This document shows, piece after piece, positions 5,179 through 51,225 of a stretch of 64,000 nt of DNA. Made by a program: the position numbers and the translations under genes. The notes under the pieces are model-generated. The model had not been told where the DNA came from. It saw only the letters and a program-made list of their open reading frames with translations, and did not search any database. Source of the DNA: Oculina patagonica (lineage: Eukaryota). The DNA lies in the NCBI RefSeq assembly GCF_052425735.1, contig NC_135758.1, positions 12,772,001 to 12,836,000 on the forward strand. The letters run 5' to 3'. Within the stretch, counting starts at the first letter, position 1. Every line of letters starts with the position of its first letter.

Positions 5179-5703
5179 ATGGCACAAAATGGTCTCGCCC
5201 AAATCGGATTTGGCGGTCTTGCAGAGCATGGAAACAGATTATCTGCATTTAAACCCGTCATTTCAAGAAAACCAAGAAAACAGGCATGCCCCCGATTTTT
5301 ACCTGAATACAATATCCAGGACAATCCTCTTGCCGCCTTAGAGGATTTTGTGACCAATTACTTCAGTGAAGAGTCATCTTTAGAGCTAGATCGAGTACCC
5401 TTGAAGAAGCACCGATCATTTAATCGTAAGCCTCTACCAGAAACAATATCGAAATCGACCAAAAAGAGTGTTTTTTCGGAGGTGCAAGTTCAGACGCTAG
5501 AGGACAGTTTCCAGTTTAAACAACATTTGTCACCCAATTCTAGAGAGTGGCTGGCGAAACTTATTGGCTTATCAAAGCGTCAGGTGATCACATGGTTCCA
5601 AAATCGACGCGCCAGAGAGCGTAAAAGAGCTGGAATTAAAATGCCGAGACATGGCAAAAAGTGCGTGGTAATGGATTTCACAATTTCAGACTTGAGGGTA
5701 TAA
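5179..5703 (+). CDS. Intronless ANTP/NK-class homeobox protein, Lbx (ladybird)-like, 174 aa
   Basis: Homeodomain at aa 92-151 with F8, LSPxxRxxLA and QVITWFQNRRA (Q50). The upstream NPLAALEDFVTNYF resembles the Lbx-family SPLCALEELASKTF motif. Single ORF from ATG to TAA. Confidence 0.88.
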   Translation: MAQNGLAQIGFGGLAEHGNRLSAFKPVISRKPRKQACPRFLPEYNIQDNPLAALEDFVTNYFSEESSLELDRVPLKKHRSFNRKPLPETISKSTKKSVFSEVQVQTLEDSFQFKQHLSPNSREWLAKLIGLSKRQVITWFQNRRARERKRAGIKMPRHGKKCVVMDFTISDLRV

Positions 5704-18486: not shown

Positions 18487-21400
18487 CTAGTTGAGGTTCT
18501 CACTGGGAGCCGAAAATAAAACACTGAGACAGTTGAATACAACAAGACACAGAACAATCCACATGAACAAGCGATTAAGCACCTGCGCGGCAAAACGCCA
18601 TTCCTCCTTATGCCGTTCTTTCTCGTCATCTTTCTTAGTTCTTTCTACGAGAATGTCCAAAGCTTCGGATTGCTTCGAATTTTGAGTGACTCGTTTCCGT
18701 ACATTTGGGTTTCGATCGTCTAGCTTCTTTAACTGGATGGACGCCGTTGATACTACAGACCCGGGCGGTTGAGCATGATTCGCGTTTACAAACGGGTTCG
18801 TTGCAGCAGGCTCTGCGCTCTCCTCGCTATACAACCTCTCTCCAAGTGAGTGTCTCCTCATGTTTCGGTTCTTTAGGAAGCGTTTCGCAGGGAGGCACGA
18901 TTCGTTTTTGCTTCCGTTCCGCTTGACGCGTAACACGTTTGCGCACCACTGACAAATAAAAAGACGTACCCAGGCCGGTAGAGGCGTTGGTGCGTGATGG
19001 TGAAACGTGAGTACAACGCACGTGAAAACGATTGAGATGAAAACGTTTATCATCGTAAGCGTGTAGTAGCGTGAAATGAGCGGAACCACTTCGGACGTGG
19101 CTGGAAGTTCTTCGGCTAATAAAAGAAGTATCACGGTTAACGACAACAGCACGGTCACGCCCACATTCATCCTCTCCCCAGACTCCACGGGTAGAAAAAA
19201 TCCGAGGATTGTCAAAGCCGACATGAGAACACAAGGCGTCAAGAAGTTTAGGATGTAATACATGGTCCGACGGCGGATTATAACGTTGTAAGTAATGAAA
19301 GGATAAGGCTCCGGGCAGCAGCGATACTTGGTTATGAACTTGGTAACAGGCATCCCAACTAGGACCCATTCTCCGTTATCTGTGAAGGCGTTAGTGTCGC
19401 CTGGTCCGCTGTGGAATATGTCAAGGCTTAGACCGTGATATGACCACGAACCAAACTTCAGGATACATTTCTGAAAGAAAAAGCAACAAGAAACAAATCG
19501 TATGTATCGATCACAATATGAGGCCAAGGTTTATCCTGTCGGCGCAAAACAGGATTCATTTTTGAAGCACTTATTGAGAAGACGCAGTTTGATTTGCTCA
19601 AATCCCAGCTCCTTTGATACTTATAGATCTAGACTAACAGAAGAACCGAAAAACCTGGTTAGAAATCGAACCCTTTGAGATGTTCTTTCCAGTTTGGACA
19701 GTGACACCTAATCTCCGCAATACGTACCATTTGCACACTTCTCCAGCTTCCAGTCTTTTTCGGTAGCGAGGCTAATATTAACTTTTGATCAGTTGGTCAT
19801 TTGATTTTGGGGAAAACCTCGCCATTATTGAAAGGTAACTTCAACTTGGTTCAGCTTGGTTTTACAAAAAAGAAGTAAGCACCCCACGTCGCCAAAACTA
19901 TTGTAAATATCACAGTACATGTACGCATGCTTATAACTTTAAGTGTATATACCTGATCATCAAATGGAAAATACGTCACGTCAATGGTACATGAACTCTT
20001 GAATATTGTTGGGTAGAACCAGCCTACATTTCCATTAGAGTTAATGGTAAGTCCATAATATTCCTCTTTCTCTTTGTCATAATTGTCGTTAGCGCTTTGA
20101 AAAGAGAAAAAAAGAAAGGTGAACAATTTGCGTCATGAATTAAATCCAGGATGGAATGAATGAAGTAGGGTATTAAATTCAACAGTTTGTCACTGGGCAA
20201 GGCTGATCAAATGAAGAAATTCTTGAGTTATGCACCTTAAATATACTAGTAGCGCCCGCCTAATGAGTTGCGAAGCCAGCCTGAAAAAAATAGGCATCAA
20301 CGGCATTCCAGCCCATGACCTTTGCGATGCCGGTGCAGTGTTTTAACACTGAGCTACTCAACCACCCTTTTCACTTCAAATATATGATTTTAATGCGCTG
20401 TTTTTATATAATTTATTTGTTTTAACCTTTTAAGTCCAAGCTCGACATAAAAGTTCTACTTACTCTTTTGTGCTAAGAGTTAAGACCGGGCAGTACGTGA
20501 GTATAGCAAGACAACAAACATCGTAAGTTAAAATACAAGAATGAATCTTTTCACACTCACTTGTTATACAAGGTGATATCTGGAAGCCAAACTTTCTTTG
20601 ACGACGTCACAAAAGACCGTATCGATCCATAATGAGAGCTGTTCCATTTTAGTCTAAAGTCGTTCCAGTACTGAAAAGAAAAACAAGATAAGGAATCATT
20701 GTTATAAAGACATTTTATCACGACAGCAGCGAAAACGTAGAAACAACGCATGCATGTAGAAATACTTCATCGAATTTTGAACTCATAGAGACTATGTGGG
20801 TTGAAGTTTGTTCTCATGCTCTCCTAATTCTGTGTGGTTTATGCTGGTAAACCTTGAAACTACTTAGTCTATTGCTTGAATTAAGTGACAGGCGTTAATA
20901 CGCAGGAAGACGGGGCTGCACAGAGCGGGGGAGACACTACCCTCGCCCCATACCTCTTACCCTGAGACGTTTTGTCACGCTGTTCTAGATGGCATTTCCG
21001 CGGCCAATCATGGCTTTTTGATCTAGATATAGATCTAGATCTAGTCAGAACAAGTAAAGGAACTGGTCGAGGTCAGGATACAAAGGAAAAGGGTTTTTTA
21101 TTCCTACATATCATAGGTATCATAGATCAAATAAATTCCTTTTCAGTTTGACGGTTATGTGGTCGCTATGGATAACTTACCAGCCTCACCCACACAATCG
21201 TCGTCATAGTTTGCAGTCTTTCATCCTACAAAATAAAAAAAAACAACAGTAACAAAAACATCGTCAGTACCATAAATACTGAAATAAACTGGTCCTTCTC
21301 CATAGGTAACTTTTTTGCTTAGTCAGACAAAAATGGAACATCGGAAAATGGAACAGAAGTTTGACTACTTCCACCATTTGAGGAAGTATGCAGAACACAG

Positions 21401-32700: not shown

Positions 32701-34854
32701 CTAGTGTGTCAATGACGTCAGGTACAAATTCAATGCCAAGTCACCACCTGCTTTATAAGCATTGAAAGTTCCTCTACATTTAGGACACTTGGCTTTCCGA
32801 AAATTGCCAGAATAATCAACCACCAATGATTCAACAGCACACAAGGGACACTTGTATTTCGCCACCTGAATTCCTTTTAGTGATCGTATCAATTTGGCAG
32901 CAACCTCAGCACCATGTTGGCCGTACGCTTTTCTTTCTTCCGAACTCAAGCTGTTCAAAGTCCAAAACACGTCCACAAATTTTAGGCCAAGGACATCAGA
33001 ATTCTGCACCCTGAAGAACCCATTGTCTGCCCAGTCATCCCCCCATGAATTCATCAGACGTAAGCTCTCCGCGTCATAACTTGTGAGAACTACTGCATGG
33101 CCGCCTGGTTTGCTTGCTGAGTGATGCTTCAAATCGAGGTAGGCTCTTGTAAGGATTCCTTTTGGATTCTCTTCATAGAACTTGGAGAACTGATCCCACT
33201 GGGCTCCAGTCAGATGAAATGTGACAACCACTGGTCTCTTTGCAGAGACGGCTTTCATAGCACCAACAGCATCAACCTTTTTGCATTGCAGACGATATCT
33301 TGGACAAATTTCCTTGAGAACTTTAATGGTTCGGGCTCCATCTTCTCCATATTCAGCAATCAATTTCTCTCGTAACTCAAAGAAATCTGGATAACCACCA
33401 TCTCGCCCAATGATGCGCTTCATGGCCAGGTGTAGAACAGCAGCAGATGCATTTGCATAACAGGTACCTCCATGTTGCTTTTTTGCACCAAACCCTTCAC
33501 TTGCCTGGTTGATATAAATATCCAGATCAACTGAGGAGAGAATATCTGAAAGGGCATCTTGACTCAGGACTCCGTTCTTGGCCATGTCACAGACATCTTT
33601 GATGATTTCTGGATTGTTCACTTGAAAGAAGAGTCTGGTTTCATTGTTGTCAATATCGATCTTCCATCCTCTCTTCACAAACATGGTGCGTGGTATCTCC
33701 TGAGTTGTGATGGTGGAGCTCATTCTGAACATGAACTTTGCTGGCTCTTCCCAACTTTCGTCTGGAATGCTGTACAAATGACGAGGATCTGATAGCCTTT
33801 GGTCTGTAATGAAACAACTCACAATGGCAACTCCCAGATCAGACAACTCTTGGAGTGGTGGTTTGTTTCCATCAGACGGCTGACCATCGGAGAGAATAAA
33901 AAGAAGTTTCAGATGATTTGCAAACTCTGGGTTGGAAAACAGTTTCACTGAATCACGCATAGCTTGGATGAGCGGAGTCCCTCCATAAATGAAGGGTTCT
34001 ACAGCATTCAGCATCTCATCAACCCGTTTATCAGTTAGGTCTTGATCACCGATACTGGCATGTAATATTTCTGATGCATTGTGAACACTCCTAATTGCAG
34101 CTTTGCTGACACCCACCATTTCTACAACGGCTTTCATGGTTTCAGCCACAAGTTGTTTGTTGACACCCGCCATTTCTACAGAGGCTCTTATGGTCTCAGC
34201 CACAAGTCGTTCACCCTTCATAATCGCTTCTCTGATTGCATCTTCTGTCCCTGCTTGCACATGTTCACCACAACCTGGAACAAAGCCCGCCATGAAAACC
34301 AAACCATCATTAAAGGTTAATTCGCGACATTCTCTAGGAAGACAATCTTCAACAAACTTTTCAGTAAAATAAGGACTTTTTTGTAGAAAATGAAGTATCG
34401 CAGCAGCAGTACTCTCATCAACAACTTTGAGCAAGATATCCATTTCTGCCCATTTGCGAACTCTCGATGCTCCATTTCTTTCAAGAATAGCCAAGGCTTC
34501 ATTCAGAATTGATTCTGTGCTTCTCTTTGATCTCAAATCTTCTATGGAGGATTGATCATCTTGCGCTTTTTCAACGGTGCTCTTGCTGCTACTTGATCTC
34601 AGTTCTCCAATGGAGGATTGTTTCTCTTGTGCTTTATCAACAGTGCTTAACAAATCAAAGACTTCAGGATGAGAAGGACTACCAAAAGCCAAAGCAAAGG
34701 TCTGATTTGATGATGAGACATCATGCTTGATCAATTCATCAACCACTTTGAAGATAGACCTTACCCAACTCCCACCTTCCACACCCGTCCCGTCACCAAC
34801 ACTGTTTCTCATGGAGCCAGACACATCCACCAAAATGCCTATCAGGGTCGGCAT
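32701..34854 (-). CDS. vWA-domain + papain-like (C1) cysteine peptidase + C-terminal zinc-ribbon protein, paralog A (717 aa), single coding exon
   Basis: MIDAS DVSGS, GGTPL and LFILSDG. Catalytic QHGGTCYANA, GGHAVVLTSY, MNSWGDDWADNGFFRV. CPLC...CPKC at the C-terminus. Acceptor TTTTCAATTAG|GAACG-ATG. Confidence 0.92.
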   Translation of the reverse strand: MPTLIGILVDVSGSMRNSVGDGTGVEGGSWVRSIFKVVDELIKHDVSSSNQTFALAFGSPSHPEVFDLLSTVDKAQEKQSSIGELRSSSSKSTVEKAQDDQSSIEDLRSKRSTESILNEALAILERNGASRVRKWAEMDILLKVVDESTAAAILHFLQKSPYFTEKFVEDCLPRECRELTFNDGLVFMAGFVPGCGEHVQAGTEDAIREAIMKGERLVAETIRASVEMAGVNKQLVAETMKAVVEMVGVSKAAIRSVHNASEILHASIGDQDLTDKRVDEMLNAVEPFIYGGTPLIQAMRDSVKLFSNPEFANHLKLLFILSDGQPSDGNKPPLQELSDLGVAIVSCFITDQRLSDPRHLYSIPDESWEEPAKFMFRMSSTITTQEIPRTMFVKRGWKIDIDNNETRLFFQVNNPEIIKDVCDMAKNGVLSQDALSDILSSVDLDIYINQASEGFGAKKQHGGTCYANASAAVLHLAMKRIIGRDGGYPDFFELREKLIAEYGEDGARTIKVLKEICPRYRLQCKKVDAVGAMKAVSAKRPVVVTFHLTGAQWDQFSKFYEENPKGILTRAYLDLKHHSASKPGGHAVVLTSYDAESLRLMNSWGDDWADNGFFRVQNSDVLGLKFVDVFWTLNSLSSEERKAYGQHGAEVAAKLIRSLKGIQVAKYKCPLCAVESLVVDYSGNFRKAKCPKCRGTFNAYKAGGDLALNLYLTSLTH

Positions 34855-36989
34855 CGTTCCTAATTGAAAAATATTAATAAAATGTATTGATTTCTAATAA
34901 TAATAATAATAATACTAATAAGATTAACAAGAGAAAAACATATTGTAAAACAACACATATAGATACATACAATTTTTTACGACAGATTTACGATACTGGA
35001 TAGCGCTTTAGAACGCCATGCGCGCTATTTTCGTCTTAACTATCTGTCCTAGTACGCAACAGACCGTTGAAACGAAAATCACACGAATGGCTTTCTAAAG
35101 CATTAGAATGACAAAAAAGTGACACCAGGTGAGATTTTAAGTTTTATTATAGCTTTTCAATGGCTGTAAGAGATATTTTTCCCAACTTTATTTAAAATCC
35201 ATACAAGCTCTTCCTATAGCACATCCATACAAACTGTCATAGTACGCTTTGGGTACCTGTGGACTCGCTTACAAAAGTGCAAGATTTTCATTTCACTTAA
35301 AAAATTATGTGAATGGCAGGAGGCTTGTTTTAGTTAAGGAGCATGTTCATTTCCAAACAAGGTGACATCTCATAGTCTGTGCAAATTGCAAGTTATTATA
35401 AATGCAGGAATAAAAGATGATGTAAACAAGATCCACTGTTCTGACATGTTTCATGAACATTCGTTTCAATTGTTAACTTTTAAATAATTTCTCCCAAATT
35501 TATTGCTGTAAATTTACTAAAAATTCCATTCAATTGATTGAAATTTTATTTTCCAGACTCCAGCATTTCTGCTACCTTAGTGATCAAAGATCCGGGCACA
35601 ACAAAGATTGCCCTAATCATGCAGCATACAAATGCAAATGTTAGAGCACATGCCTTTATCAAAATAAGTCGACTTAACATTTGGCGAGATCAATAATGTA
35701 TTTGCTGACTCAAAACTTGACAAAAGTTGTGAAGAATATGGGGATACCACTGAAAGACTGCAAACAAGAGAATAAAAAAGCTTCCAAACAAAAGAGAAAT
35801 CATTAATATATACAAGATTCAAGAAAGAAGGGATGTTGAAAATTTTAATCACACAAGTTTCTGTATGTCTATCTTTTATACGTTTTTCTAAGAAACATGT
35901 GTCAATACATGTACAAAAACAACTTTCAAAATCTATAAATGAAAACCAGACATACAAATATGACATGTACAGGTGGCAAAAAGTGGCAAAAGAGTGATCA
36001 TTATTACAATTCTTAGAAAGAAGGCATGTTGAAAATTCCAACCATAATAAGTCATGCAGAACTGGCATCAATGTCTTTTACTAAGGAAATGCGTTACAAA
36101 ACAACATCCAGTTGGGCTCTTAGTCTCCTCTTGCCAAGCACATTGGTATAATAATTAACAGAAATATACATGTTCAGCAAAAACAAATTCTTGATTATGT
36201 GTGAAATTACAAATGGCAAAATGAAATAAGTAGCCATGACTCTGTGTGCGGACCTTCATCTCCCTAGTTATTCTTAGAAAGATGGGAAGTTGAAACTCCA
36301 AAAAGTACGCCTAACTTTTAGGCATGTCTGTATAAAAACGAGCGCCCTGCGATCTGTCAGACAGAATTCGAAGATTTCATTTCAGTTAAGATTTAGTATA
36401 AAATGCAGAAATGCAGTGGGGCTTTTTCGTCCACAATAACTAAGCATGTGAAACGCATCGTAACATAAATAAATCTAGTTTACGTTCAATCAATCAATCA
36501 TTTTTTATGCTCTTAGGACTACAAGCTCATTGGTATAATAAAAGAAATATAGACATGTTTAGCAAAAATATTCTCGTTGTTTTTAATGCCTCGCTAAGTA
36601 AAATTATAGCTCGCACACAAATTAAATGGCAAAATAGATTAAGTAGCCATGACTCTGTGTGAAGACCTTCACCTCCTTAAAATTCCTAGAAAGATGGGAA
36701 GTTGTAACTCTAAGTGCGTCTATCTTTTAGGCGTTTATGAATAAAATGAGCGCCCTGCAATCTGTGAAAGAGAAGTTTTATTTCAGTTAAGATTTGGTAT
36801 AAAATGACTTGCCTGAATAAGACATGCTCAAATTTTACATGTAAGCTTGACATGACTGCTCATGGTTCAAGTAATACGAGATCTCAAAAACCGAAAAACC
36901 CTTCCCTTCCCGGGAACCTTCATGTAGCAAATCAAAGCTATAAAGAGGAAAAATCTCGTTTGTGAATAACATCTCAGCAACTTACGATC

Positions 36990-37380
36990 TACAGTACAGC
37001 CCCGATAACTCGAACTCTGAAGGGAAACAAAAAACAGTTCGAGTTAGCGGGGTTTTGAGTTATCGCGGTCGATTTAATATTTAATTTGCAAAGTTAATAA
37101 TTGATAGTTTACTGATTGTTCAGCACTTTTCAGTATACAGTACAATGTAAGTTGAATTTATCCCTCCAGAAACTCTAACACGACCATACATTATTATGAT
37201 AAGAGTGCAAAATGGCTGTCAAATACGTGATCTGTTCGTTGCTCTAATCAATGGGCAACCGTGGCGAGTTGCAAGAACTAAAATTCGAGTTATAGGGGAA
37301 AATTGATCCAAATGGTTATCAAGTGAAACGAAATTTAGTTCAAGAGGGCGGATTGTTCGAGTTATCCGAGTTCGAGCAAT
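36990..37380. mobile_element. Degenerate Tc1/mariner-like MITE (GATAACTCGAAC / GTTCGAGTTATC modules); copies at ~39270-39665, 42205-42595 and 44485-44880
   Basis: TACAGTA..CGATAACTCGAAC at the left and GTTCGAGTTATCCGAGTTCGAG at the right. Confidence 0.55.
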
Positions 37381-37915
37381 TGGTTGCAAGTAAATTTTCA
37401 CTAGCTCTTTGCAATTCACGAGAAAATATGTGCACAAACGAACAAAACCTAACAATGTTGACATTTGCGATCCCGAAATAAACATTCGGATGAATTTCGG
37501 AGACAACACTGATCAGATTAACGCCTTATTACAGCAAATTTTGATGAAGTCAACATTTATTTCCTTGTTCGAACAAAACTTGGGGCTTTTTGCATTGGTG
37601 ACCAAATTGGTCAGAAACCGTGAGTTCAACGGAAGCAAACCAAATAACAGTGAGGTTAAACCATAGACGTTTTTTATACACATGCTAAGCCGAATTTTCG
37701 CCAAAACATCAATATATAAAAGCTCAGTCGATTGCTTTTCCTTCTCATTGTTAAAAGTGAAAGTGCGCCACAAACAAGAATTTTAACTTCCGCTTTCCCT
37801 CCGTGGCTTACAAATTTTCGTTTTTACGTTCCTTAATGCAAACCTAACACAAGAAATGAGTCTGACTATCTCTAATAAGTTACATCAGTGCTTAAAAAAA
37901 TTTACATTTGTATTT

Positions 37916-38040
37916 GCTTACCTGGAAACTATAAACGCTATATCCTTCCAACCTCTTGGGTTGTTTACAGCCGATATTTTAAATCATCACTGCACGTAAA
38001 AGAAAGTTGGACACCAGTCACGTGTCAGTTGTTCACCAAT
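37916..38040 (-). promoter_or_regulatory. Putative promoter + non-coding first exon cassette A1
   Basis: CCAAT 38036-38040; GTCACGTG 38017-38024 (11-nt gap); donor CAG|GTAAGC at 37921-37916. Confidence 0.6.
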
Positions 38041-40217
38041 GTTACATTAAAATTACAATTGCCGAAATGTGCCTCAAAACTCAACAAAAGTTGTCAAAAA
38101 TATGGGAATACCACTGAAAGACTGCTGACAAGAGAATAGAAAAGCTTCCATACAACAGAGAAATCCTTTAATGTATACAAGACATACAGCAAACTACAAT
38201 CACTGCCCATAACCCTTTTGACCCCAATTTCCGAGTCAATTCCAAGAAAGAAGGAATAATGAAAATTGCAATCACACAAGTTTCTGCATGTCTATCCTTA
38301 TACCTTTTTCTAAGAAAGATGTGTCTACCTTCAATACCTTTTACTAAGAAAATGAGTTACAAAAAACAAAAAAGGTTTAGATCTGCAAAGATATACAATG
38401 GACGAGCACATTGGTAAAATAATTAACAGAAATAGACATGTTTAGCAAAAGATCTGTTGTTCATAATGAATAAAATGACAAATGACAAAAAACCTTTATC
38501 TCCCTAATAAATCTTAGAAAGATGGGAATTTAAAACTCTAAAAAGTACGTCTAACTTTTAGGCATTTCAGTATGAAAATGAGCGCATGGCAATCTGTCAG
38601 ACAGAAGATTTCATTTCAGTCAAGATTTACTACAAAATGCAGAAATGCAGTGGGGCTTTTCGTCCACAATATCTAAGTATGTAAAACACGTCGTAAAAAA
38701 AAAATTACGTTCAATCAATCAATCAATCTGCATTTTTGGTGCTGGAATTTCCTATGGCCAAGCTCATTGGTATAATAATGAGACATGTTTAACAGAAATA
38801 TTCTTGTTGCTTTTAATGCCTCGCTAAATATAATCATAGGTAACACAAAAATTAAATGACAAATGACAAAATACCACAAACAGCCATTACTCTGCGTGAG
38901 GACCTTAACCTCTCTATAATTCCTAGAAAGATGGGAAGTTGTAACCCTAAGTGCGTCTATCTTTTAGGCGATTTTGTATGAAATGAGCGCCCTGTAATCT
39001 GCCAGACAAAAAGTTTCATTTCAGTAAAGATTTAGTATAAAATGCAGAAATGCAACAGAATGCCCAAAGTCACTTGCTGAATAAGACATGCTCAAATTTT
39101 ACATGTAGGCTTAACATGACTGCACAAGGTTCAATTATAAAAACATTTTCAAAGTTATTAAATACATTGTAAATGCAAAAAACCCTTCCTGGCAACCTTC
39201 AAGTAGCAAATCAAAGCTATAAGGTTGCAAATATCTGGTTTGTGAATAACATCTCAGAAACTTGTGATGTACAGTACTGCCTCGATAACTCGAACTAGAT
39301 CTGAAGGAAAACAAAAACCCGTTCGAGTTAGCGAGTTTTCGAGATATCGAGGTCGATTGAATATTTAAAAATTTGCAAAGTTAATAACTGATACTTTACT
39401 GGTTTTCAGCACTTCTCAGTATGATGTACAGTGCAAATTTAACATATCTTGCCTAGATCTGTAACACGACTATGCATTCTTATGAAATGAGTGGAAAATT
39501 CACTGTCAAATACGTGATCTGTTCGTTTCTCTAATCAATGGGCAACCGTGGCGAGTTGCAAGAACCGGAATTCCAGTTATCGGGGTAAATTTGACCCAAA
39601 TATTGATCAAGAGAAACGAAATTTAGTTCGAGTGGGCGGGGTGTTAAAGTTATCCGAGTTCGAGCAATTGGTTGCAACTAAGTTATTACTAACTCTTTGC
39701 AATTCACGAGAAGATATGTGCACAAACAAACGCAACCTAGCAATGTTGACATTTGCTTCCAGTAGAGCTGCAAGTTTATACAAAAGGCATCCTTGAGACA
39801 ACTAAACCTTCAGATAAATTTCGGAGGATCAAAAAAACACCTTATTGCTGCAAATTTCGATGAAGTAAACATTTGCTTTCTTTTTCGAACGAAACCTGGG
39901 GCTTTTTGGCAACCACAATGGTCAGAATAGAAACCGTATTTTAACCAATGCAAACCACATAACAGTGAGCTTAAAACATAGACCTTTTGTATTCACCTCC
40001 TAAGTCAACTTTTCGTCAAGAACATCCGGATCAAACGCTTAAACGATTGCTTTTCTTTCTTATTGTTTAAAGTAAAAGTGCGCAACAAACAAGAATTTTC
40101 CGGTTTCTGTTTGTGTCTTAAAAATCTTTTCGTTGTTACGTCCCTAAATACAAACCTACACAAGGAATGAGTCTAACTCGATTTTAGTTGCATCCTAAAA
40201 CAGCTACATTTGTATTT

Positions 40218-40374
40218 GCTTACCTGGAAACAATAGAACTGTAATATGAGCCAAACGCCAAGACTGCGAGCCTTTCAAGCTTTTGTGTTGTTTAAATACA
40301 GCCGATAGCTTAAATCACCACTGCATATGAAGGAGGAAGGTTGGTAACCAGTCACGTGTCAGTTTTTTACCAAT
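40218..40374 (-). promoter_or_regulatory. Putative promoter + non-coding first exon cassette A2
   Basis: CCAAT 40370-40374; GTCACGTG 40351-40358; donor CAG|GTAAGC at 40223-40218. Confidence 0.6.
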
Positions 40375-43130
40375 AAAATTCGATGTTTATGGCGGATGTA
40401 AATAAGCCGTCTCCCGAGTTTGGGATGGGGGTGGGGGGGTGAGGGTGAGGTACTCCCATTACCAGAAACTGCTACAGAACGGTATAGAAACGGTAAAGAA
40501 ACAATACAGAACGTCCTGGAGAAGGGTAGGGAGAATTTTCTTTTGATTCAGCGAAGTATTTAATGACACGACGTAACAATAATGCGGAATTTAAGCTTAA
40601 TTGCAAGTTATTATAAATGCAGGAATAAAAGATGATGTAAACAAGATCCACTGTTCTGACATGTTTCATGAACATTCGTTTCAATTGTTAACTTTTAAAT
40701 AATTTCTCCCAAATTTATTGCTGTAAATTTACTAAAAATTCCATTCAATTGATTGAAATTTTATTTTCCAGACTCCAGCATTTCTGCTACCTCAGTGATC
40801 AAAGATCCGGGCACAACAAAGATTGCCCTAATCATGCAGCATACAAATGCAAATGTTAGAGCACATGCCTTTATCAAAATAAGTCGACTTAACATTTGGC
40901 GAGATCAATAATGTATTTGCTGACTCAAAACTTGACAAAAGTTGTGAAGAATATGGGGATACCACTGAAAGACTGCAAACAAGAGAATAAAAAAGCTTCC
41001 AAACAAAAGAGAAATCATTAATATATACAAGATTCAAGAAAGAAGGGATGTTGAAAATTTTAATCACACAAGTTTCTGTATGTCTATCTTTTATACGTTT
41101 TTCTAAGAAACATGTGTCAATACATGTACAAAAACAACTTTCAAAATCTATAAATGAAAACCAGACATACAAATATGACATGTACAGGTGGCAAAAAGTG
41201 GCAAAAGAGTGATCATTATTACAATTCTTAGAAAGAAGGCATGTTGAAAATTCCAACCATAATAAGTCATGCAGAACTGGCATCAATGTCTTTTACTAAG
41301 GAAATGCGTTACAAAACAACATCCAGTTGGGCTCTTAGTCTCCTCTTGCCAAGCACATTGGTATAATAATTAACAGAAATATACATGTTCAGCAAAAACA
41401 AATTCTTGATTATGTGTGAAATTACAAATGGCAAAATGAAATAAGTAGCCATGACTCTGTGTGCGGACCTTCATCTCCCTAGTTATTCTTAGAAAGATGG
41501 GAAGTTGAAACTCCAAAAAGTACGCCTAACTTTTAGGCATGTCTGTATAAAAACGAGCGCCCTGCGATCTGTCAGACAGAATTCGAAGATTTCATTTCAG
41601 TTAAGATTTAGTATAAAATGCAGAAATGCAGTGGGGCTTTTTCGTCCACAATAACTAAGCATGTGAAACGCATCGTAACATAAATAAATCTAGTTTACGT
41701 TCAATCAATCAATCATTTTTTATGCTCTTAGGACTACAAGCTCATTGGTATAATAAAAGAAATATAGACATGTTTAGCAAAAATATTCTCGTTGTTTTTA
41801 ATGCCTCGCTAAGTAAAATTATAGCTCGCACACAAATTAAATGGCAAAATAGATTAAGTAGCCATGACTCTGTGTGAAGACCTTCACCTCCTTAAAATTC
41901 CTAGAAAGATGGGAAGTTGTAACTCTAAGTGCGTCTATCTTTTAGGCGTTTATGAATAAAATGAGCGCCCTGCAATCTGTGAAAGAGAAGTTTTATTTCA
42001 GTTAAGATTTGGTATAAAATGACTTGCCTGAATAAGACATGCTCAAATTTTACATGTAAGCTTGACATGACTGCTCATGGTTCAAGTAATACGAGATCTC
42101 AAAAACCGAAAAACCCTTCCCTTCCCGGGAACCTTCATGTAGCAAATCAAAGCTATAAAGAGGAAAAATCTCGTTTGTGAATAACATCTCAGCAACTTAC
42201 GATCTACAGTACAGCCCCGATAACTCGAACTCTGAAGGGAAACAAAAAACAGTTCGAGTTAGCGGGGTTTTGAGTTATCGCGGTCGATTTAATATTTAAT
42301 TTGCAAAGTTAATAATTGATAGTTTACTGATTGTTCAGCACTTTTCAGTATACAGTACAATGTAAGTTGAATTTATCCCTCCAGAAACTCTAACACGACC
42401 ATACATTATTATGATAAGAGTGCAAAATGGCTGTCAAATACGTGATCTGTTCGTTGCTCTAATCAATGGGCAACCGTGGCGAGTTGCAAGAACTAAAATT
42501 CGAGTTATAGGGGAAAATTGATCCAAATGGTTATCAAGTGAAACGAAATTTAGTTCAAGAGGGCGGATTGTTCGAGTTATCCGAGTTCGAGCAATTGGTT
42601 GCAAGTAAATTTTCACTAGCTCTTTGCAATTCACGAGAAAATATGTGCACAAACGAACAAAACCTAACAATGTTGACATTTGCGATCCCGAAATAAACAT
42701 TCGGATGAATTTCGGAGACAACACTGATCAGATTAACGCCTTATTACAGCAAATTTTGATGAAGTCAACATTTATTTCCTTGTTCGAACAAAACTTGGGG
42801 CTTTTTGCATTGGTGACCAAATTGGTCAGAAACCGTGAGTTCAACGGAAGCAAACCAAATAACAGTGAGGTTAAACCATAGACGTTTTTTATACACATGC
42901 TAAGCCGAATTTTCGCCAAAACATCAATATATAAAAGCTCAGTCGATTGCTTTTCCTTCTCATTGTTAAAAGTGAAAGTGCGCCACAAACAAGAATTTTA
43001 ACTTCCGCTTTCCCTCCGTGGCTTACAAATTTTCGTTTTTACGTTCCTTAATGCAAACCTAACACAAGAAATGAGTCTGACTATCTCTAATAAGTTACAT
43101 CAGTGCTTAAAAAAATTTACATTTGTATTT

Positions 43131-43255
43131 GCTTACCTGGAAACTATAAACGCTATATCCTTCCAACCTCTTGGGTTGTTTACAGCCGATATTTTAAATC
43201 ATCACTGCACGTAAAAGAAAGTTGGACACCAGTCACGTGTCAGTTGTTCACCAAT
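43131..43255 (-). promoter_or_regulatory. Putative promoter + non-coding first exon cassette A3 (copy of A1)
   Basis: CCAAT 43251-43255; GTCACGTG 43232-43239; donor at 43136-43131. Confidence 0.6.
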
Positions 43256-45432
43256 GTTACATTAAAATTACAATTGCCGAAATGTGCCTCAAAACTCAAC
43301 AAAAGTTGTCAAAAATATGGGAATACCACTGAAAGACTGCTGACAAGAGAATAGAAAAGCTTCCATACAACAGAGAAATCCTTTAATGTATACAAGACAT
43401 ACAGCAAACTACAATCACTGCCCATAACCCTTTTGACCCCAATTTCCGAGTCAATTCCAAGAAAGAAGGAATAATGAAAATTGCAATCACACAAGTTTCT
43501 GCATGTCTATCCTTATACCTTTTTCTAAGAAAGATGTGTCTACCTTCAATACCTTTTACTAAGAAAATGAGTTACAAAAAACAAAAAAGGTTTAGATCTG
43601 CAAAGATATACAATGGACGAGCACATTGGTAAAATAATTAACAGAAATAGACATGTTTAGCAAAAGATCTGTTGTTCATAATGAATAAAATGACAAATGA
43701 CAAAAAACCTTTATCTCCCTAATAAATCTTAGAAAGATGGGAATTTAAAACTCTAAAAAGTACGTCTAACTTTTAGGCATTTCAGTATGAAAATGAGCGC
43801 ATGGCAATCTGTCAGACAGAAGATTTCATTTCAGTCAAGATTTACTACAAAATGCAGAAATGCAGTGGGGCTTTTCGTCCACAATATCTAAGTATGTAAA
43901 ACACGTCGTAAAAAAAAAATTACGTTCAATCAATCAATCAATCTGCATTTTTGGTGCTGGAATTTCCTATGGCCAAGCTCATTGGTATAATAATGAGACA
44001 TGTTTAACAGAAATATTCTTGTTGCTTTTAATGCCTCGCTAAATATAATCATAGGTAACACAAAAATTAAATGACAAATGACAAAATACCACAAACAGCC
44101 ATTACTCTGCGTGAGGACCTTAACCTCTCTATAATTCCTAGAAAGATGGGAAGTTGTAACCCTAAGTGCGTCTATCTTTTAGGCGATTTTGTATGAAATG
44201 AGCGCCCTGTAATCTGCCAGACAAAAAGTTTCATTTCAGTAAAGATTTAGTATAAAATGCAGAAATGCAACAGAATGCCCAAAGTCACTTGCTGAATAAG
44301 ACATGCTCAAATTTTACATGTAGGCTTAACATGACTGCACAAGGTTCAATTATAAAAACATTTTCAAAGTTATTAAATACATTGTAAATGCAAAAAACCC
44401 TTCCTGGCAACCTTCAAGTAGCAAATCAAAGCTATAAGGTTGCAAATATCTGGTTTGTGAATAACATCTCAGAAACTTGTGATGTACAGTACTGCCTCGA
44501 TAACTCGAACTAGATCTGAAGGAAAACAAAAACCCGTTCGAGTTAGCGAGTTTTCGAGATATCGAGGTCGATTGAATATTTAAAAATTTGCAAAGTTAAT
44601 AACTGATACTTTACTGGTTTTCAGCACTTCTCAGTATGATGTACAGTGCAAATTTAACATATCTTGCCTAGATCTGTAACACGACTATGCATTCTTATGA
44701 AATGAGTGGAAAATTCACTGTCAAATACGTGATCTGTTCGTTTCTCTAATCAATGGGCAACCGTGGCGAGTTGCAAGAACCGGAATTCCAGTTATCGGGG
44801 TAAATTTGACCCAAATATTGATCAAGGGAAACGAAATTTAGTTCGAGTGGGCGGGGTGTTAAAGTTATCCGAGTTCGAGCAATTGGTTGCAACTAAGTTA
44901 TTACTAACTCTTTGCAATTCACGAGAAGATATGTGCACAAACAAACGCAACCTAGCAATGTTGACATTTGCTTCCAGTAGAGCTGCAAGTTTATACAAAA
45001 GGCATCCTTGAGACAACTAAACCTTCAGATAAATTTCGGAGGATCAAAAAAACACCTTATTGCTGCAAATTTCGATGAAGTAAACATTTGCTTTCTTTTT
45101 CGAACGAAACCTGGGGCTTTTTGGCAACCACAATGGTCAGAATAGAAACCGTATTTTAACCAATGCAAACCACATAACAGTGAGCTTAAAACATAGACCT
45201 TTTGTATTCACCTCCTAAGTCAACTTTTCGTCAAGAACATCCGGATCAAACGCTTAAACGATTGCTTTTCTTTCTTATTGTTTAAAGTAAAAGTGCGCAA
45301 CAAACAAGAATTTTCCGGTTTCTGTTTGTGTCTTAAAAATCTTTTCGTTGTTACGTCCCTAAATACAAACCTACACAAGGAATGAGTCTAACTCGATTTT
45401 AGTTGCATCCTAAAACAGCTACATTTGTATTT

Positions 45433-45589
45433 GCTTACCTGGAAACAATAGAACTGTAATATGAGCCAAACGCCAAGACTGCGAGCCTTTCAAGCTTTTG
45501 TGTTGTTTAAATACAGCCGATAGCTTAAATCACCACTGCATATGAAGGAGGAAGGTTGGTAACCAGTCACGTGTCAGTTTTTTACCAAT
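45433..45589 (-). promoter_or_regulatory. Putative promoter + non-coding first exon cassette A4 (copy of A2)
   Basis: CCAAT 45585-45589; GTCACGTG 45566-45573; donor at 45438-45433. Confidence 0.6.
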
Positions 45590-46089
45590 AAAATTCGATG
45601 TTTATGGCGGATGTAAATAAGCCGTCTCCCGAGTTTGGGATGGGGGTGGGGGGGTGAGGGTGAGGTACTCCCATTACCAGAAACTGCTACAGAACGGTAT
45701 AGAAACGGTAAAGAAACAATACAGAACGTCCTGGAGAAGGGTAGGGAGAATTTTCTTTTGATTCAGCGAAGTATTTAATGACACGACGTAACAATAATGC
45801 GGAAATTAAGCTTAATTCACAAAGAACATGAGTTCAAATCATTGAAATTTTTTCAGGCCCTCGACTCAACTTCTTTAACTGCAAAGATCTTCTTTTCTTT
45901 CGGTGTTTCTACTGCAGTTGAAACGAACTAACTTTAAAATATTGTTTTCAACGTTGGTGCCTTTTTTGTCATTGCTGATGTATCAAAACTGCTCTATGTA
46001 ACAGCCCATTGTAAACTATTATTTAAGTTTAGTTCTGTTGTTTTACACATACCTTAGATAGTAACATTACGTTTAACCGGTGAGAGTTG

Positions 46090-46164
46090 CTATATAAATG
46101 AAAGAGTCATAAGGTATTCCAGAGACTTTTTACCATCATTATTAACAGCCTAAAGACAATCCAT
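46090..46164 (-). pseudogene. Decayed fragment of the UBAP1-like last exon (MDCL*AVNNDGKKSLEYLMTLSFI*)
   Basis: Aligns to 60920-60994 with a CAG>TAG nonsense change. Flanking 45960-47150 matches pieces of 60810-63975. Confidence 0.85.
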
Positions 46165-46617
46165 TAATCAGTAGGCCAATAAATAAATGAATTCATAAAC
46201 CTTTATAATCCAAGTTAAATCTCAGTTGAGAAAAAGTGCTGCAGAAACCACAAATAGGTAAGAAACAAGCAACATTTTCAATGATATAAATGGAACCAAG
46301 AATTCTATGGCCAGTTTTTCACATATGGGGGGGGGGGGGGCAGGCACAAGTCTTCTTTGTGGTCAATTATTACATTTGTGGCTTTTACACACCTTTATTA
46401 CAAAGGAGGTGGAGAGATGCTGGTGTGAAGTCACATTCATTGTTTTCTGTAATGCATGAAAAAGTGTATACTAGCTTTTCACTGGGCTACATTGCGCTAC
46501 TAGTCCACGACCAGTGATGAGGCCACAAAGGTGTTTTTTCCCCAACATTTTTATTTCCCCTCAGTTATTTTAAAATATACTTTTGGGCACAAAGATCAAA
46601 AGCATCTTTACAGCATA

Positions 46618-46956
46618 CTATAAAATTCCAGTTATAAGCCCTGGTCTTATACAACTTCGTAAGGGGTTTTGGTTGGGGTCATAAACTGAGCGGCTTATTT
46701 TCGGGAGGGCATATAAACGGAATAAAAAATGCTGCCAGCCACCGGGAATTACGTTTTTTATGTTAAAAAATCATAATAAGGCAACATTTATTTAGCCCTG
46801 GTCAGTACTGTCATTCAGTAGAGGTGGGCTTATATCCGGGGGAGCATTTAACCGAATGTTTTTTTGTTTTGAGGTAGATGGGCCTACGACCAGGGGCCTT
46901 CTAAGCGGGAAGGCGGTGGGGGGGGGGGGGGGGGGCTTATAACCAGAATTTTACGG
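46618..46956. mobile_element. Tc1/mariner-type MITE
   Basis: TA|CTATAAAATTCCAGTTATAAGCCC ... GGGCTTATAACCAGAATTTTACGG|TA. Confidence 0.75.
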
Positions 46957-49152
46957 TACGTTAAATATATATAATAATTATTATTCAAATCTACATGTAT
47001 AATATTATTAATACATAAAATAACGGTACAATAAGTTCATCTTTGTTATAACTAGATGATTATCTACCACCTATGAACAATTTCCATTCATTTGGGATTA
47101 CACCACTACTAAAAATTATTTATCACTTAGTTTATCCAATTTACCTATCAAAAAATCCCGAACAATTATTTCAAAATATTCACCGAAAAGTGCAAAACAG
47201 AAGCTTTTAAAATCCTTCCAAAAAGGTTTATGAGAGGGCATTTATAAAATAGGTGATAAGCCATTTCCGATCTAACTAACAAAATGTGCAACAAAGCCTA
47301 CATTAATTTAATATTGGCTAGAAAACTGTTTACTTGACAAGTGTTGTATCATTCAAGATTTTAAATTTGAAACCAAATAAAAAGCCTTACTTTTAAAAAC
47401 ACTCAAGTACGAGTTTAGTCATCTACACCAAGACCACGTATTCGTGTACACCTCGAAACCAAAGGATCATTATGCTGTCTAGTGTAACTGATTTCTTATC
47501 TCTGTATGTTGCATTATTTCAGGAAAATGACATTCTCGTGTGCTATATTGAATTAAAACTGAAAGGCGAGATTGCTTAATCTCATTAAGCATATTCCTAG
47601 TTAAATGCATAGTTAAAAAACATAAGCTGAAGGTGATTATTGTTGTGAGCAAATTGTCTGTGTGTCTAGCTAGGTCCTAGAAATAATCCTAATTTCCTCC
47701 ACAACCATAGTGGTATTTTAACTTTATTTCTCGTTAATTTATTACCTAAACACTGACGTGCACAAGAAAACCTGTATGACCTGTGTATACTACTGTAATT
47801 TGGTGTAATTCGTAATAACATGACAACAATATCTGTTAGACAGACTTTTACTTTGAGGTCCGTTCTCTAGAATTAAAACTAAAATTTAACCCCATTTCCT
47901 TTTGCATACCCCAAAATGTTTTACCTTAGCAAAACATTGTTAGTTAAGCTTCTCAACGACTTTTTGTGCCTTATTTTCTCTAAGCGCTTTAATAAGAACA
48001 CGTGAATACGTTAATACATTCAAAAACAAATTCCAAACGATGGCAAATGCAATTAAGGTTATTCCTTGGTATTGCATTGCACATCCTTACTGCACGTAAT
48101 TTCACACGTGAGTAGCACGCATACGTTAAGAAAATATGCTAGTACACTACATGATAGCAACAAGTTGAATCAAAGTCTATAGAAAATGTTTCACTTTATA
48201 ATGAAAAACTCACTTGTTCAATTGTTCCTTGAAGTCAATGCAGTACACTTTTTCTCATGTTTCACTTTACTTTATCCCTTTTTCTACTCCCATATATGAA
48301 GCCTAATAAAAGTAAACAGTTCAACTATAAAGTTTTCTAAAAGCCAATATCACAAGTAATTATCAGGTAAAATAAAAGGTCATCCTGCCCCTTAATGATT
48401 ACTGGGACCCCGTTTTTATTTCAAAACGTAACTAAAGGGACGCTACAATTTTACTGTGATACGTATCAATGAACTTATATATTTTCTTTGCAATTATAAA
48501 ATTATTTATTAGCAACCGAATGCACAAGCAAATTTGAGCCGCTACGTAGTCCCTTTTCATTTTTTGCCTGGTCGTAGTGTTGAACCAAAGTAAACAAAAT
48601 TCGTTGCTTTTTCTCTAAAGGATGAAAGGGACATATTACTAAAAGATCTTCTGCTAGAACTAACAAATGATTCACCTAAAACTCCAGGTGAACATCCACG
48701 ACTCAATATTCATCAACAGCTAACTGCAATCAGCATCTAACAAATCAGATCATAAAACCAGATTCTAGAATCATTATCAGCCGCATCAAAAAAAGGTCTA
48801 CAGTCTCCCCTGTGAGATATTTTATCCGAGACTACAACCTGCACCCACTAAGAGCTACTAAGGCTATGACATACAACCTACAACATACTACCTCAGTCCA
48901 CACCAGTCGATTTCATGTTAAATTTAGCAAGTCACACTAGCAACTTCTGCTTGATGTACAACTTTACAGCTTTCATAGGACAAAATGGCAATTGAGACAA
49001 GGTTGGTTTGTTATCTTGCTTTGACTGGCATTTCAATGGGACTGCTGTCTAAAGTTAATATTGTCTGCATAGCCAAAAAACTAAGTTATATGTAGTCTGT
49101 TGAAGTCTAAAAAATTTTTTCTCCTTACTGCATTTTGAGAGTCCGCGTTTCA

Positions 49153-51225
49153 TTAGTCCTGAATACCCTCGTGCGACAATGACATCAGGTACAAATTCAA
49201 TGCCAACTCACCGCCTGCCTTATTAGCATTGAAAGTTCCTCTACATTTAGGACACTTGGTTTTCAACAGATGACCAGAATATTCTACTACCAATGACTCA
49301 ACAGCACACAAGGGACACTTGTATTTTGTCACCTGAATTCCTTTCAGTGATCTAATCAATTTGGCAGCGACTTCAGCACCATGTCGGTCGTAGGCTCTCT
49401 TTTCTTTCTCACTCAAGTCGTCTTCAGTCCAAAACACGTCCACAAATTCTAGGCCAAGGACATCAGAATTCTGCACCCTGAAGAACCCCTTGTCTGCCCA
49501 GTCATCCCCCCATGAATTCATCAGACGAAAGCTCTCGGCGTCATAACTTGTGAGAACTACTGCATGGCCACCAGGGTCGCTGGTTGAGTGATGCTTCAAA
49601 TCGAGGTAGGATCTTGTAAGGATTCCTTTTGGCTTTTCTTCACAGAACTGGGAGAACTGATCCCACTGGGCACCCGTTAGATAAAATCTGACAACCACTG
49701 GTCTCTTTGCAGAGACGGCTTTCATTGCACCAACAGCATCAACCTTTTTGCATTGAAGACGATATGTTGGACAAATTTCCTTGAGAACTTTAATGGTAGG
49801 GGCTCCGTGTTCTCCATATTCAGCAATCAATTTTCTTGTTAACTCAAAGAAATCTGGATAACCACCATCTCGCCCTATGATGCGCTTCATGGCCAGGTGT
49901 AGAACAGTAGCAGATGCATTTGCATAACAGGTACCTCCATGTTGTCTTTTAGCACCAAACCCTTCACTTGCCTGGTTTATATAGATATCCAGATCAACTG
50001 AGGAGAGGATATCTGAAAGAACATCTTGACTCAGGACACCTTTCTTGGCCATGTCACAGACATCTTTGATAATGTCCGGATGGTTCACCTGAAAGAAGAG
50101 TCTGGTTTCATTATTGTCAATATCGATCTCCCATCCTCTCTTCACAAACAGGGTGCGTGGTATCTTCTGAGTAGTGATGGTGGAGCTCATTCTGAACATG
50201 GTCTTTGCTGGCTTTTCCCAACTTTCATCTAGAATGCTGTACAAATGACGAGGATCGGATAGCTGTTGGTCTGTAATGAAACAACTCACAATGGTGACTC
50301 CCAGATCAGACAACTGTTGGATTGGTGGGTCGCCTTTATCACCTGGCTGACCATCTGAGAGAATGAAGAGAAGTTTCTGATAATCTGCAAATTCTGGATA
50401 GGAAAACAGATCCACTGAATGGTGCATAGCTTGAATGAGTGGAGTCCCTCCGTAAATTAAGGGTTCCACCAGTTTTAGCAACTCTTCAGCCCGTTTATCA
50501 GTTAGTTCTTGATCGCCAATACTGGCATGCAGTATTTCTGATGCATAAGGAATACTTTTAATTGCAGCTTTGCTTACACCCACTAATTTTACACTGGCCA
50601 TTATGGTCTCAGTCACAAGTTTTTTACCCTTGTCTATTGCTTCTCTGACTGAATCTTCTGTGGCCCATCCTTGAATTCGGGAACCCACAAATGGAACCTT
50701 TCCTGTCATGAAAAATGCACCTTCAACACCAATATTACGAAAGTCATATAATGATAATTCTCGACATTCTCGAGGAAGACAATCATCAACAAACCTTTTG
50801 GTAAAATCAGAACTTTTTTGCAAAAAATGAAGTATTGCAGCAGCAGTAGTATCCTCCACAACTTTCAGCAAGGTTTCCATTTTCCCCCAAGTGCGAACTC
50901 TACTTGCTCCATTTGTTTCAAGAATAGTCAAGGCTTCATCTATTATTTCTCTCTTGCTTCTCTTTGATTTCAAATCTTCAATGACGGATTGTTCCTCTTG
51001 TGCTTTATCAACTGTGGTTAACAAATCAAAAATCTCAGGATCAGAAGGACTTCCAAAAGCCAAAGCAAAGGTCTGATTTGAAGATGGGACATCATGCCTG
51101 ATCAGTTCATCGACCACTTTGAAGATAGATCTTGCCCAACGCCCAACTTCCTCATCCACCCCGTCACCAACACTGTTTTTCATGGAGCCAGACACATCCA
51201 CCAGAATTCCTATCAGGGTCGACAT
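49153..51225 (-). CDS. vWA + papain-like C1 cysteine peptidase + zinc-ribbon protein, paralog B (690 aa), single coding exon
   Basis: Same motifs as paralog A: DVSGS, GGTPL, ILSDG, QHGGTCYANA, GGHAVV, MNSWG, CPLC/CPKC. Acceptor TTTCTTTTCAAGATAAG|GAACG-ATG. Confidence 0.92.
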   Translation of the reverse strand: MSTLIGILVDVSGSMKNSVGDGVDEEVGRWARSIFKVVDELIRHDVPSSNQTFALAFGSPSDPEIFDLLTTVDKAQEEQSVIEDLKSKRSKREIIDEALTILETNGASRVRTWGKMETLLKVVEDTTAAAILHFLQKSSDFTKRFVDDCLPRECRELSLYDFRNIGVEGAFFMTGKVPFVGSRIQGWATEDSVREAIDKGKKLVTETIMASVKLVGVSKAAIKSIPYASEILHASIGDQELTDKRAEELLKLVEPLIYGGTPLIQAMHHSVDLFSYPEFADYQKLLFILSDGQPGDKGDPPIQQLSDLGVTIVSCFITDQQLSDPRHLYSILDESWEKPAKTMFRMSSTITTQKIPRTLFVKRGWEIDIDNNETRLFFQVNHPDIIKDVCDMAKKGVLSQDVLSDILSSVDLDIYINQASEGFGAKRQHGGTCYANASATVLHLAMKRIIGRDGGYPDFFELTRKLIAEYGEHGAPTIKVLKEICPTYRLQCKKVDAVGAMKAVSAKRPVVVRFYLTGAQWDQFSQFCEEKPKGILTRSYLDLKHHSTSDPGGHAVVLTSYDAESFRLMNSWGDDWADKGFFRVQNSDVLGLEFVDVFWTEDDLSEKEKRAYDRHGAEVAAKLIRSLKGIQVTKYKCPLCAVESLVVEYSGHLLKTKCPKCRGTFNANKAGGELALNLYLMSLSHEGIQD

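Follow-up and report, generated by a model that had tools for sequence, protein, structure and literature searches.

How should one read a coral protein that joins a vWA (von Willebrand factor A) domain, a papain-like peptidase and a zinc ribbon in a single chain, and that is encoded twice within a short distance? The question is raised by a stretch of Oculina patagonica DNA (contig NC_135758.1 of RefSeq assembly GCF_052425735.1, positions 12,772,001 to 12,836,000 of the forward strand), 64,000 nucleotides long and here termed the window, the numbering of which is used throughout. Its minus strand holds gene 1 (coding sequence 32701..34854), a single coding exon for 717 amino acids, and gene 2 (coding sequence 49153..51225), a paralogue of 690 amino acids with the same architecture. 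Both open reading frames (ORFs) had been described as intact in an earlier note drawn from the letters of the window, and we recover them at the same positions, together with every motif quoted there. The assignment of both genes relies on their ORFs and on Pfam, complemented for gene 1 by a structure model, homologues and contigs from sequencing runs labelled as RNA. The family to which they belong is large, eukaryote-wide yet patchily distributed, and uncharacterised. As to function, we give about an even chance to the reading that the window genes are tandem paralogues of intracellular multidomain cysteine proteases, working as ligand-gated effector or signalling enzymes of the immune or cell-death type.

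Pfam detects the VWA domain in both proteins (26.3 and 24.5 bits, cutoff 23.8) and, marginally, Peptidase_C1 (PF00112; 23.2 and 21.3 bits, cutoff 20.7), the latter match being confined to the C-terminal third of the profile, that is, to the His/Asn part; zinc-ribbon matches fall below threshold. Structure prediction followed by Foldseek, a check that had been put forward in the earlier note, recovers both the vWA and the papain-family fold. In the AlphaFold2 model (57-sequence family alignment; mean predicted local distance difference test score 85.5, predicted template modelling score 0.71) the vWA half matches complete vWA structures with their Rossmann-like fold, the closest of which include the intracellular TFIIH p44/Ssl1 and Rpn10 and among which C2a also appears, while the peptidase half matches ervatamin, xylellain, papain and cathepsins (probability 1.00, template modelling score by target 0.55-0.59), with both the L and the R lobe of the papain fold present.

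The vWA domain of gene 1 starts with residues 1-67 (34654..34854, minus strand, as are all gene 1 features), delimited by sequence, model and structure matches and containing the DxSxS motif (D10, S12, S14) of the metal ion-dependent adhesion site (MIDAS). It resumes at residues 256-412 (33619..34089), where the MIDAS residues Thr293 (GGTPL) and Asp323 (SDG) are found; all five residues are present in both genes. This second part also bears the family-specific motifs IVSCxxTD...PRxLY...RGWxI and the beta-hairpin NETRLFFQVN, and it aligns to bacterial vWA-TIR proteins. Between the two parts lies an all-helical, eukaryote-specific insert (residues 68-255; 34090..34653), and the model hence upholds the claim that the vWA domain is split, with an insertion of about 185 residues instead of the roughly 230 proposed. 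An alpha-helical linker follows (residues 413-454; 33493..33618), residues 433-448 of which are modelled with low confidence, and it leads into an alpha+beta, papain-fold, C1-like peptidase domain (residues 455-635; 32950..33492), supported by Pfam, alignments and the model. A long helix (about residues 636-664) precedes the zinc ribbon (residues 665-700; 32755..32862; CPLC-x17-CPKC, from sequence and model) and a terminal helix (residues 705-716) follows it.

The two window proteins are 75% identical, and the ratio of nonsynonymous to synonymous substitution rates of the pair (dN/dS, Nei-Gojobori) is 0.42 over the whole sequence; both copies are therefore maintained by selection. The ratio is highest in the insert (0.63), the fastest-evolving part, takes a value of 0.39 in the peptidase and is lowest in the linker (0.13), the most constrained segment. 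Gene 1 is longer mainly through two tandem duplications in the insert, of 22 and 18 amino acids, the second of which is a 54-nucleotide repeat at 34102-34211, and a structure search with the model gave no match for residues 68-255. Fast-evolving and varied by internal duplication, the insert is a candidate specificity surface. It had been suggested that the vWA domain, with its insert, takes the place of the inhibitory pro-peptide of cathepsins; if any segment plays such a part, the linker just before the peptidase, and not the insert, is the better candidate, because it is strongly constrained.

The claim of a complete papain-type catalytic set is borne out by alignment. Residues 585-618 of gene 1 align without gaps to residues 158-191 of papain, which pairs His586 (codon 33097-33099) with His159, Asn602 (33049-33051) with Asn175 and Trp604 with Trp177. 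For the nucleophile the route is indirect. The Cys box, KQHGGTCYANA, differs from the QGxCGSCW of cathepsins and aligns to QGQTGTCYANA of a xylellain-like phage peptidase, which can itself be aligned over its full length both to xylellain (E 8e-33) and to cathepsin L, its cysteine falling on Cys25 of the latter. By this transitive alignment, through the shared GTCYANA box, Cys465 (33460-33462) is the predicted catalytic cysteine, preceded by Gln460; in gene 2 the cysteine is Cys433 (codon 49927-49929). The hallmarks of animal cathepsins are missing, as had been stated earlier. Neither window protein has a signal peptide or a transmembrane-like hydrophobic stretch, the chain beginning at strand beta1 of the vWA domain; Pfam gives no match to the Inhibitor_I29 pro-domain; and the cathepsin-type disulfide cysteines, that of QGxCGSCW included, are absent, with three cysteines in the peptidase domain. 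The lack of a signal peptide, membrane segment and pro-domain, together with the small number of cysteines, argues for a reducing, cytosolic setting, in which the window proteins are probably located and in which they would be expected to act as peptidases.

Conservation across the family bears on whether these domains work as enzymes. In an alignment of about 280 sequences (278 fetched proteins and the two window ORFs), MIDAS residues are kept in 90-96% of members and each zinc-ribbon cysteine in at least 97% of those with a residue at that column. The Q-C-H-N set is intact in 203 of the 235 members that cover the domain (86%) and 240 of 241 retain His586, again counting members with a residue at that column; both window genes also retain the full Q-C-H-N-W set. 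Against this background we see a slim chance that these proteins are non-catalytic scaffolds or decoys, that is, pseudo-proteases using the vWA domain and the papain fold for binding only, a reading to which the loss of a catalytic residue in about 14% of members and the parallel with Plasmodium SERA5 lend some support. Eleven members have Ser in place of Cys at the nucleophile position (among them P0059, P0065, P0067, P0074, P0076, P0079 and P0211), both paralogues fused to TRADD-N being included; they have either switched nucleophile or become pseudo-proteases.

A second alternative concerns the bond that is cleaved. The papain-fold domain might be an isopeptidase or amidase acting on ubiquitin, a ubiquitin-like (UBL) modifier or some other non-peptide-bond amide, with the zinc ribbon binding the modifier or nucleic acid and the vWA domain docking as in Rpn10 or TFIIH p44. 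Enzymes of the cytosol that have a papain fold very often turn out to be deubiquitinases or UBL proteases, and the presence of p44/Ssl1 and Rpn10 among the closest vWA structures, the high conservation of the zinc ribbon and a resemblance of the GGTCYANAS box to the USP box, GNTCYMNS, which we take as a lead only, all fit such an activity. The significant fold and sequence matches, however, are all to family C1 and none to USP, UCH, OTU or Ulp, both the His box and NSWG are of the kind usual in C1, and Pfam identifies no ubiquitin-related domain; we therefore leave this alternative a small chance.

Relatives of the window proteins are numerous. A word-indexed search returned 607, including more than 100 distinct Acropora and Montipora proteins named just "uncharacterized" and others from the annelid Owenia and the fish Coilia, and an exhaustive search of representative sequences gave 1265 clusters at E<=1e-3, of which 259 at E<=1e-30. 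The distant named members come from a tardigrade, a clam, a flatworm and a foraminiferan, and also from an octocoral, a brittle star, rotifers and a second clupeid fish, while UniProt and AlphaFold DB clusters contain more, automatically named "VWFA domain-containing" or "Peptidase C1A...". In the ESM Atlas the match (score 0.98) is an all-eukaryote cluster of 322 members in which Ascomycota are the commonest, and two metagenomic members sit amid typical eukaryotic housekeeping genes on compact, protist-like contigs. Corals show a great expansion of the family, a single contig sometimes carrying several paralogues, and the closest relative of the window genes (P0004) also lies in a tandem pair. 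Vertebrates are represented among the named hits by two clupeiform fishes only, Coilia grayii (P0116) and Alosa pseudoharengus (P0351), a patchy distribution that reflects either loss elsewhere or horizontal acquisition. Eight relatives of about 380-480 amino acids (P0306, P0307, P0308, P0309, P0314, P0315, P0321 and P0328) all stop immediately short of the hairpin and linker, at one and the same position of the profile, and may constitute a sister group with vWA and insert only, rather than truncated models. No other effector domain was recognised in the mid-length eukaryotic relatives, most of which are truncated models or forms of this vWA-and-insert type.

In some members further domains stand before the module, namely GT4-conflict (P0063, P0067), TRADD-N (P0067, P0074) and Death (P0145, E 2e-18). 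Where the junction is visible (P0067, and P0030, which has a short extension with no Pfam match), it is the exon boundary of the window genes, and the fused paralogues read through the same acceptor boundary as gene 1. One of these fusions is already on record: the supplementary tables of Kaur, Iyer, Burroughs & Aravind 2021 (eLife 10:e70394) list Acropora digitifera LOC107356762 (P0067) as "GT4+TRADD-N+vWA+SERAprotease+ZnR", and the protease is never mentioned in the main text of that paper. LOC107356762 is 64% identical to gene 1 over the whole 717 amino acids (100% query coverage), with the same order of domains and the same exon boundary before the vWA domain, and in a tblastn search its residues 530-1217 match both window genes. 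It differs in its N-terminal GT4 and TRADD-N domains and in a K-S-H-N set with Ser as nucleophile, whereas the window genes are stand-alone and have Cys; the "SERA" label may have been prompted by that Ser, after Plasmodium SERA, which is conjecture on our part. The view that this architecture is not a characterised family thus needs qualification: it has been catalogued once in a supplement, and members exist in UniProt and AlphaFold DB, yet it is experimentally uncharacterised. We also considered whether the window ORFs might be the last exons of GT4/TRADD-N genes, and rejected this possibility, since tblastn with the N-terminal parts of P0067, P0063 and P0074 found no such exons in the window and the sole upstream exon is probably non-coding.

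A different line of evidence comes from bacteria. A length-restricted hmmsearch of 5.8 billion sequences with a profile of the vWA domain and insert reached a Bradyrhizobium protein (E 1.4e-13), in which a TIR domain follows directly after the linker. In hhalign, residues 288-429 of the query align to residues 125-270 of this protein (P0361; probability 99.7%, E 3.2e-25), a span that includes GxTP, LFxLSDGxPTDG, IVSCxxTD, PRxLY, RxW.I and RLFxQVN and continues into the linker; the N-termini are also alike, and Foldseek matches a TIR protein of the same length (E 9e-10). Scanning prokaryotic genomes with the bacterial protein yielded nine loci in six phyla, seven of which encode vWA-linker-TIR proteins. 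One of the remaining two ends after the linker, and the other, from Catenulispora, has an unassigned C-terminal domain; in this actinobacterial relative, Catenulispora yoronensis (L015:4782-6236), the domain of about 130 amino acids, with no Pfam match, replaces TIR. The best structural match of the coral vWA domain, PDB 4fx5, is a 426-residue structural-genomics vWA protein of C. acidiphila, a species of the same genus, and may be a solved member of the bacterial clade. The window proteins have no C-terminal TIR domain; its place is taken by the C1 peptidase and the zinc ribbon. Homology of the vWA-linker part combined with different C-terminal domains thus amounts to a shared chassis with different effectors in the eukaryotic family and the bacterial proteins. 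Swapped effectors on a shared chassis would be a pattern typical of conflict systems, and, judged from sequence, the vWA-linker half probably descends from, or shares ancestry with, the bacterial vWA-linker-TIR proteins. At five bacterial loci no MoxR gene was found beside the relative, and the neighbours vary from locus to locus. In Bradyrhizobium forestalis (L007:8001-11096) a second gene with a TIR domain (447 amino acids) comes next after the vWA-TIR gene, and the two may form a two-gene TIR unit; as a further vWA relative the second gene was rejected, having no vWA homology. NCBIfam returned nothing meaningful for the window proteins.

On these grounds we postulate that the peptidase occupies the effector position of an effector-swapped vWA-linker module. 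The MIDAS would capture part of a partner or target protein, either an acidic residue or a peptide in extended form, extended peptides having been proposed as ligands of a vWA MIDAS (PMC7159879) and factor B/C2 providing an analogy. Binding, alone or with oligomerisation, would be relayed through the linker and would switch on or position the peptidase, and the papain-like domain could then act on substrates in the cytosol, cleaving them in an effector or signalling capacity within a pathway of the immune or cell-death type. The Death, TRADD-N or GT4 domains of some paralogues would plug the module into adaptor networks. We infer both the MIDAS gating and the immune role; of the part in innate immunity or stress response suggested earlier, a link to immunity or cell death seems likely in view of the Death, TRADD-N and GT4 fusions, the expansion in corals and the homology to bacterial vWA-TIR proteins.

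Several observations weigh against this reading. Gln460 stands at position -5 from Cys465 and not at -6. Gene 1 and gene 2 themselves lack Death, TRADD-N and GT4 domains, and their recognisable neighbours in the window, a homeobox gene and two Cys-loop channel genes, are ordinary genes that form no immune cluster. PADLOC gave no match for the window proteins. The family is present in fungi and protists, to which an animal-type immune role does not directly apply, and literature searches by architecture, by SERA plus vWA and by six coral-orthologue NCBI locus names found no experimental study of any member. As for expression, the absence of which the earlier note counted as a refutation, contigs from RNA-labelled runs span the gene 1 ORF, including a 1000-nucleotide piece with 6 mismatches, the RNA label being itself a guess; gene 2 is weakly supported, its highest word share in these runs being 0.21, against 0.65 for gene 1. 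A more far-reaching proposal, which we hold tentatively and regard as rather doubtful, is that the family comprises undescribed, eukaryote-wide, MIDAS-gated cytosolic cysteine proteases that arose from a bacterial vWA-effector defence module by exchange of TIR for a xylellain-like C1 peptidase, expanded in corals and, wired through Death and TRADD-N, came to act, independently of caspases, as executioner or signalling protease in immunity, in allorecognition or in cell death induced by stress.

The gene models are informative in their own right. Before each ATG a pyrimidine-rich tract ends in an AG 5 nucleotides from the start codon, in gene 1 at 34860..34861 and in gene 2 in the equivalent sequence aagataAG/gaacgATG, and the similarity between the paralogues ends about 16 nucleotides 5' of the ATG. 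The gene 1 acceptor, indicated by the sequence and by this limit of similarity, is also used in the public partial model ACROYT_G001159, which matches the N-terminal part of gene 1 with full identity and is spliced exactly there to an upstream exon at 40222..40305 with a canonical donor (G/GTAAGC at 40222/40221). This exon, which has an in-frame stop (40315-40317) and no later ATG, is most simply a 5' untranslated region (UTR), which makes Met1 the start. Public O. patagonica models are partial, comprising 311 amino acids of gene 1, with the UTR exon read as coding, and 386 amino acids of gene 2 (ACROYT_G001160, 98.7% identity), and the full architecture is therefore invisible in the public proteome of this species. 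Upstream of gene 1, a block at 35074-35407 is covered in all three RNA-labelled runs, to a depth of about 500-1000 in run X14, and the adjoining 34907-35073 has essentially no coverage, with a GT at 35073-35072 on the minus strand. The block could be a repeat, or a further 5' exon spliced to the gene 1 acceptor; no splice joint was reported for it. The contigs of run X2 do not reach the 3' flank of gene 1.

The same gene structures bear on the possibility that the genes are cargo or derivatives of a mobile element or virus, their copy number arising from transposition and not from host function. An intronless coding sequence in a multi-copy family of very patchy phyletic distribution would suit this origin, and so would the fusion of one Macrostomum model to RNase H, the Mutator and Pox_A32-like ORFs a few kilobases from the closest homologue and weak ESM Atlas leads to giant-virus and phage C1 clusters. 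Gene 1, however, has a canonical spliced 5' exon, and the duplicated block consists of the coding sequence and part of the 3' flank, beyond which there are just short scattered matches; likewise, just the coding sequence and short pieces of 3' flank align between the window and the locus of the closest homologue. Neither inverted repeats nor long terminal repeats border the genes, their neighbours here and on the protist contigs are normal host genes, dN/dS is below 1, and the single viral contig matched encodes a stand-alone xylellain-like peptidase. The absence of flanking repeats and the nature of this sole viral contig led us to reject a mobile-element or viral origin as the main explanation, and we grant it a very slim chance overall. 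The ORFs near P0004, in another genome (L006:16205-21512), contain domains of the Mutator transposase, RNase_T-like and Pox_A32 (a packaging ATPase) types, and may belong to a Polinton/Maverick-like or other mobile element.

Between the two window genes lies a 5215-bp unit repeated in tandem with 100% identity (35384-45813; units starting at 35384 and 40599), within which an older internal repeat of about 2.2-2.3 kb shows 83-87% identity. Each unit contains one copy of the upstream exon of gene 1, the identical second copy being at 45437..45520 (minus strand) in the next unit. Either the duplication happened very recently or the repeat is an artefact of the assembly; it could be a source of alternative first exons. 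Elsewhere in the window, a homeodomain-encoding ORF lies at 5179-5703 on the plus strand, and paralogous exons at 8347-9216 and 18487-19527, both on the minus strand, encode the transmembrane region of Cys-loop ligand-gated ion channels, making up a second tandem gene pair.

Corals have very large and poorly understood immune and cell-death repertoires, bleaching and disease are central in coral biology, and O. patagonica is a classic model of Vibrio-associated bleaching. A conserved intracellular papain-like protease that is probably active would be a new kind of regulated protease beside caspases, paracaspases and metacaspases, belonging to a vWA-coupled family with dozens or more copies per coral genome. 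New to this analysis are the retention of the catalytic set in 86% of members, the fusion of some of them to Death, TRADD-N and GT4-conflict domains, and the homology of the vWA-linker part to bacterial vWA-TIR proteins, which offers one more instance of eukaryotes reusing a conflict module of prokaryotes, as well as a concrete effector-swap pair for comparison. Because the family extends to fungi, protists and a few fishes, working out its function in any one system would provide annotation for hundreds of proteins now called "uncharacterized". Two facts temper this finding: the earlier listing of the architecture in a supplement and the inferred nature of every functional point.

How the window proteins relate to known systems can now be stated. 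With family C1 (papain, cathepsins B, L and C, and xylellain, PDB 3OIS) they share both lobes, equivalent Gln, Cys, His, Asn and Trp residues and the GGH...NSWG His box, and the coral Cys box is nearest to the xylellain-like type of bacteria and phages. The coral domain is shorter (about 180 amino acids against about 215), has its Gln at -5 and is set between a vWA domain and a zinc ribbon; C1A cathepsins differ further in their signal peptide, I29-type pro-domain and three conserved disulfides. Complement factor B/C2 uses its MIDAS for docking on the cofactor, which licenses proteolysis. These proteins resemble the window proteins in placing a MIDAS vWA domain N-terminal to a protease in one chain and have an innate-immune role, but they are secreted, contain CCP modules and a trypsin-like serine protease, and have neither zinc ribbon nor insert; the resemblance is best taken as an analogy, with no homology of the proteases. 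In the MoxR-vWA ternary systems (Kaur et al. 2020, eLife 9:e52696), a vWA domain, a helical linker termed vWA-L and an effector follow one another, and the window proteins are alike in their vWA domain, alpha-helical linker (helix 415-454 of the model) and C-terminal enzymatic effector. In contrast to those systems, neither a MoxR AAA+ protein nor a third component (VMAP/iSTAND/TERNS3) occurs beside the bacterial relatives or in the window, Pfam matches no system component in the window proteins, and the family is eukaryotic. The bacterial vWA-linker-TIR proteins, such as CVM73_17555 of Bradyrhizobium forestalis, are homologous in MIDAS vWA domain, hairpin and linker and likewise carry their effector right after the linker; at about 430 amino acids, they have TIR in place of the C1 peptidase, no insert of about 185 residues and no zinc ribbon. 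Relative to all these systems, what is new in the coral proteins is a C1 peptidase in the effector position of a vWA-linker module.

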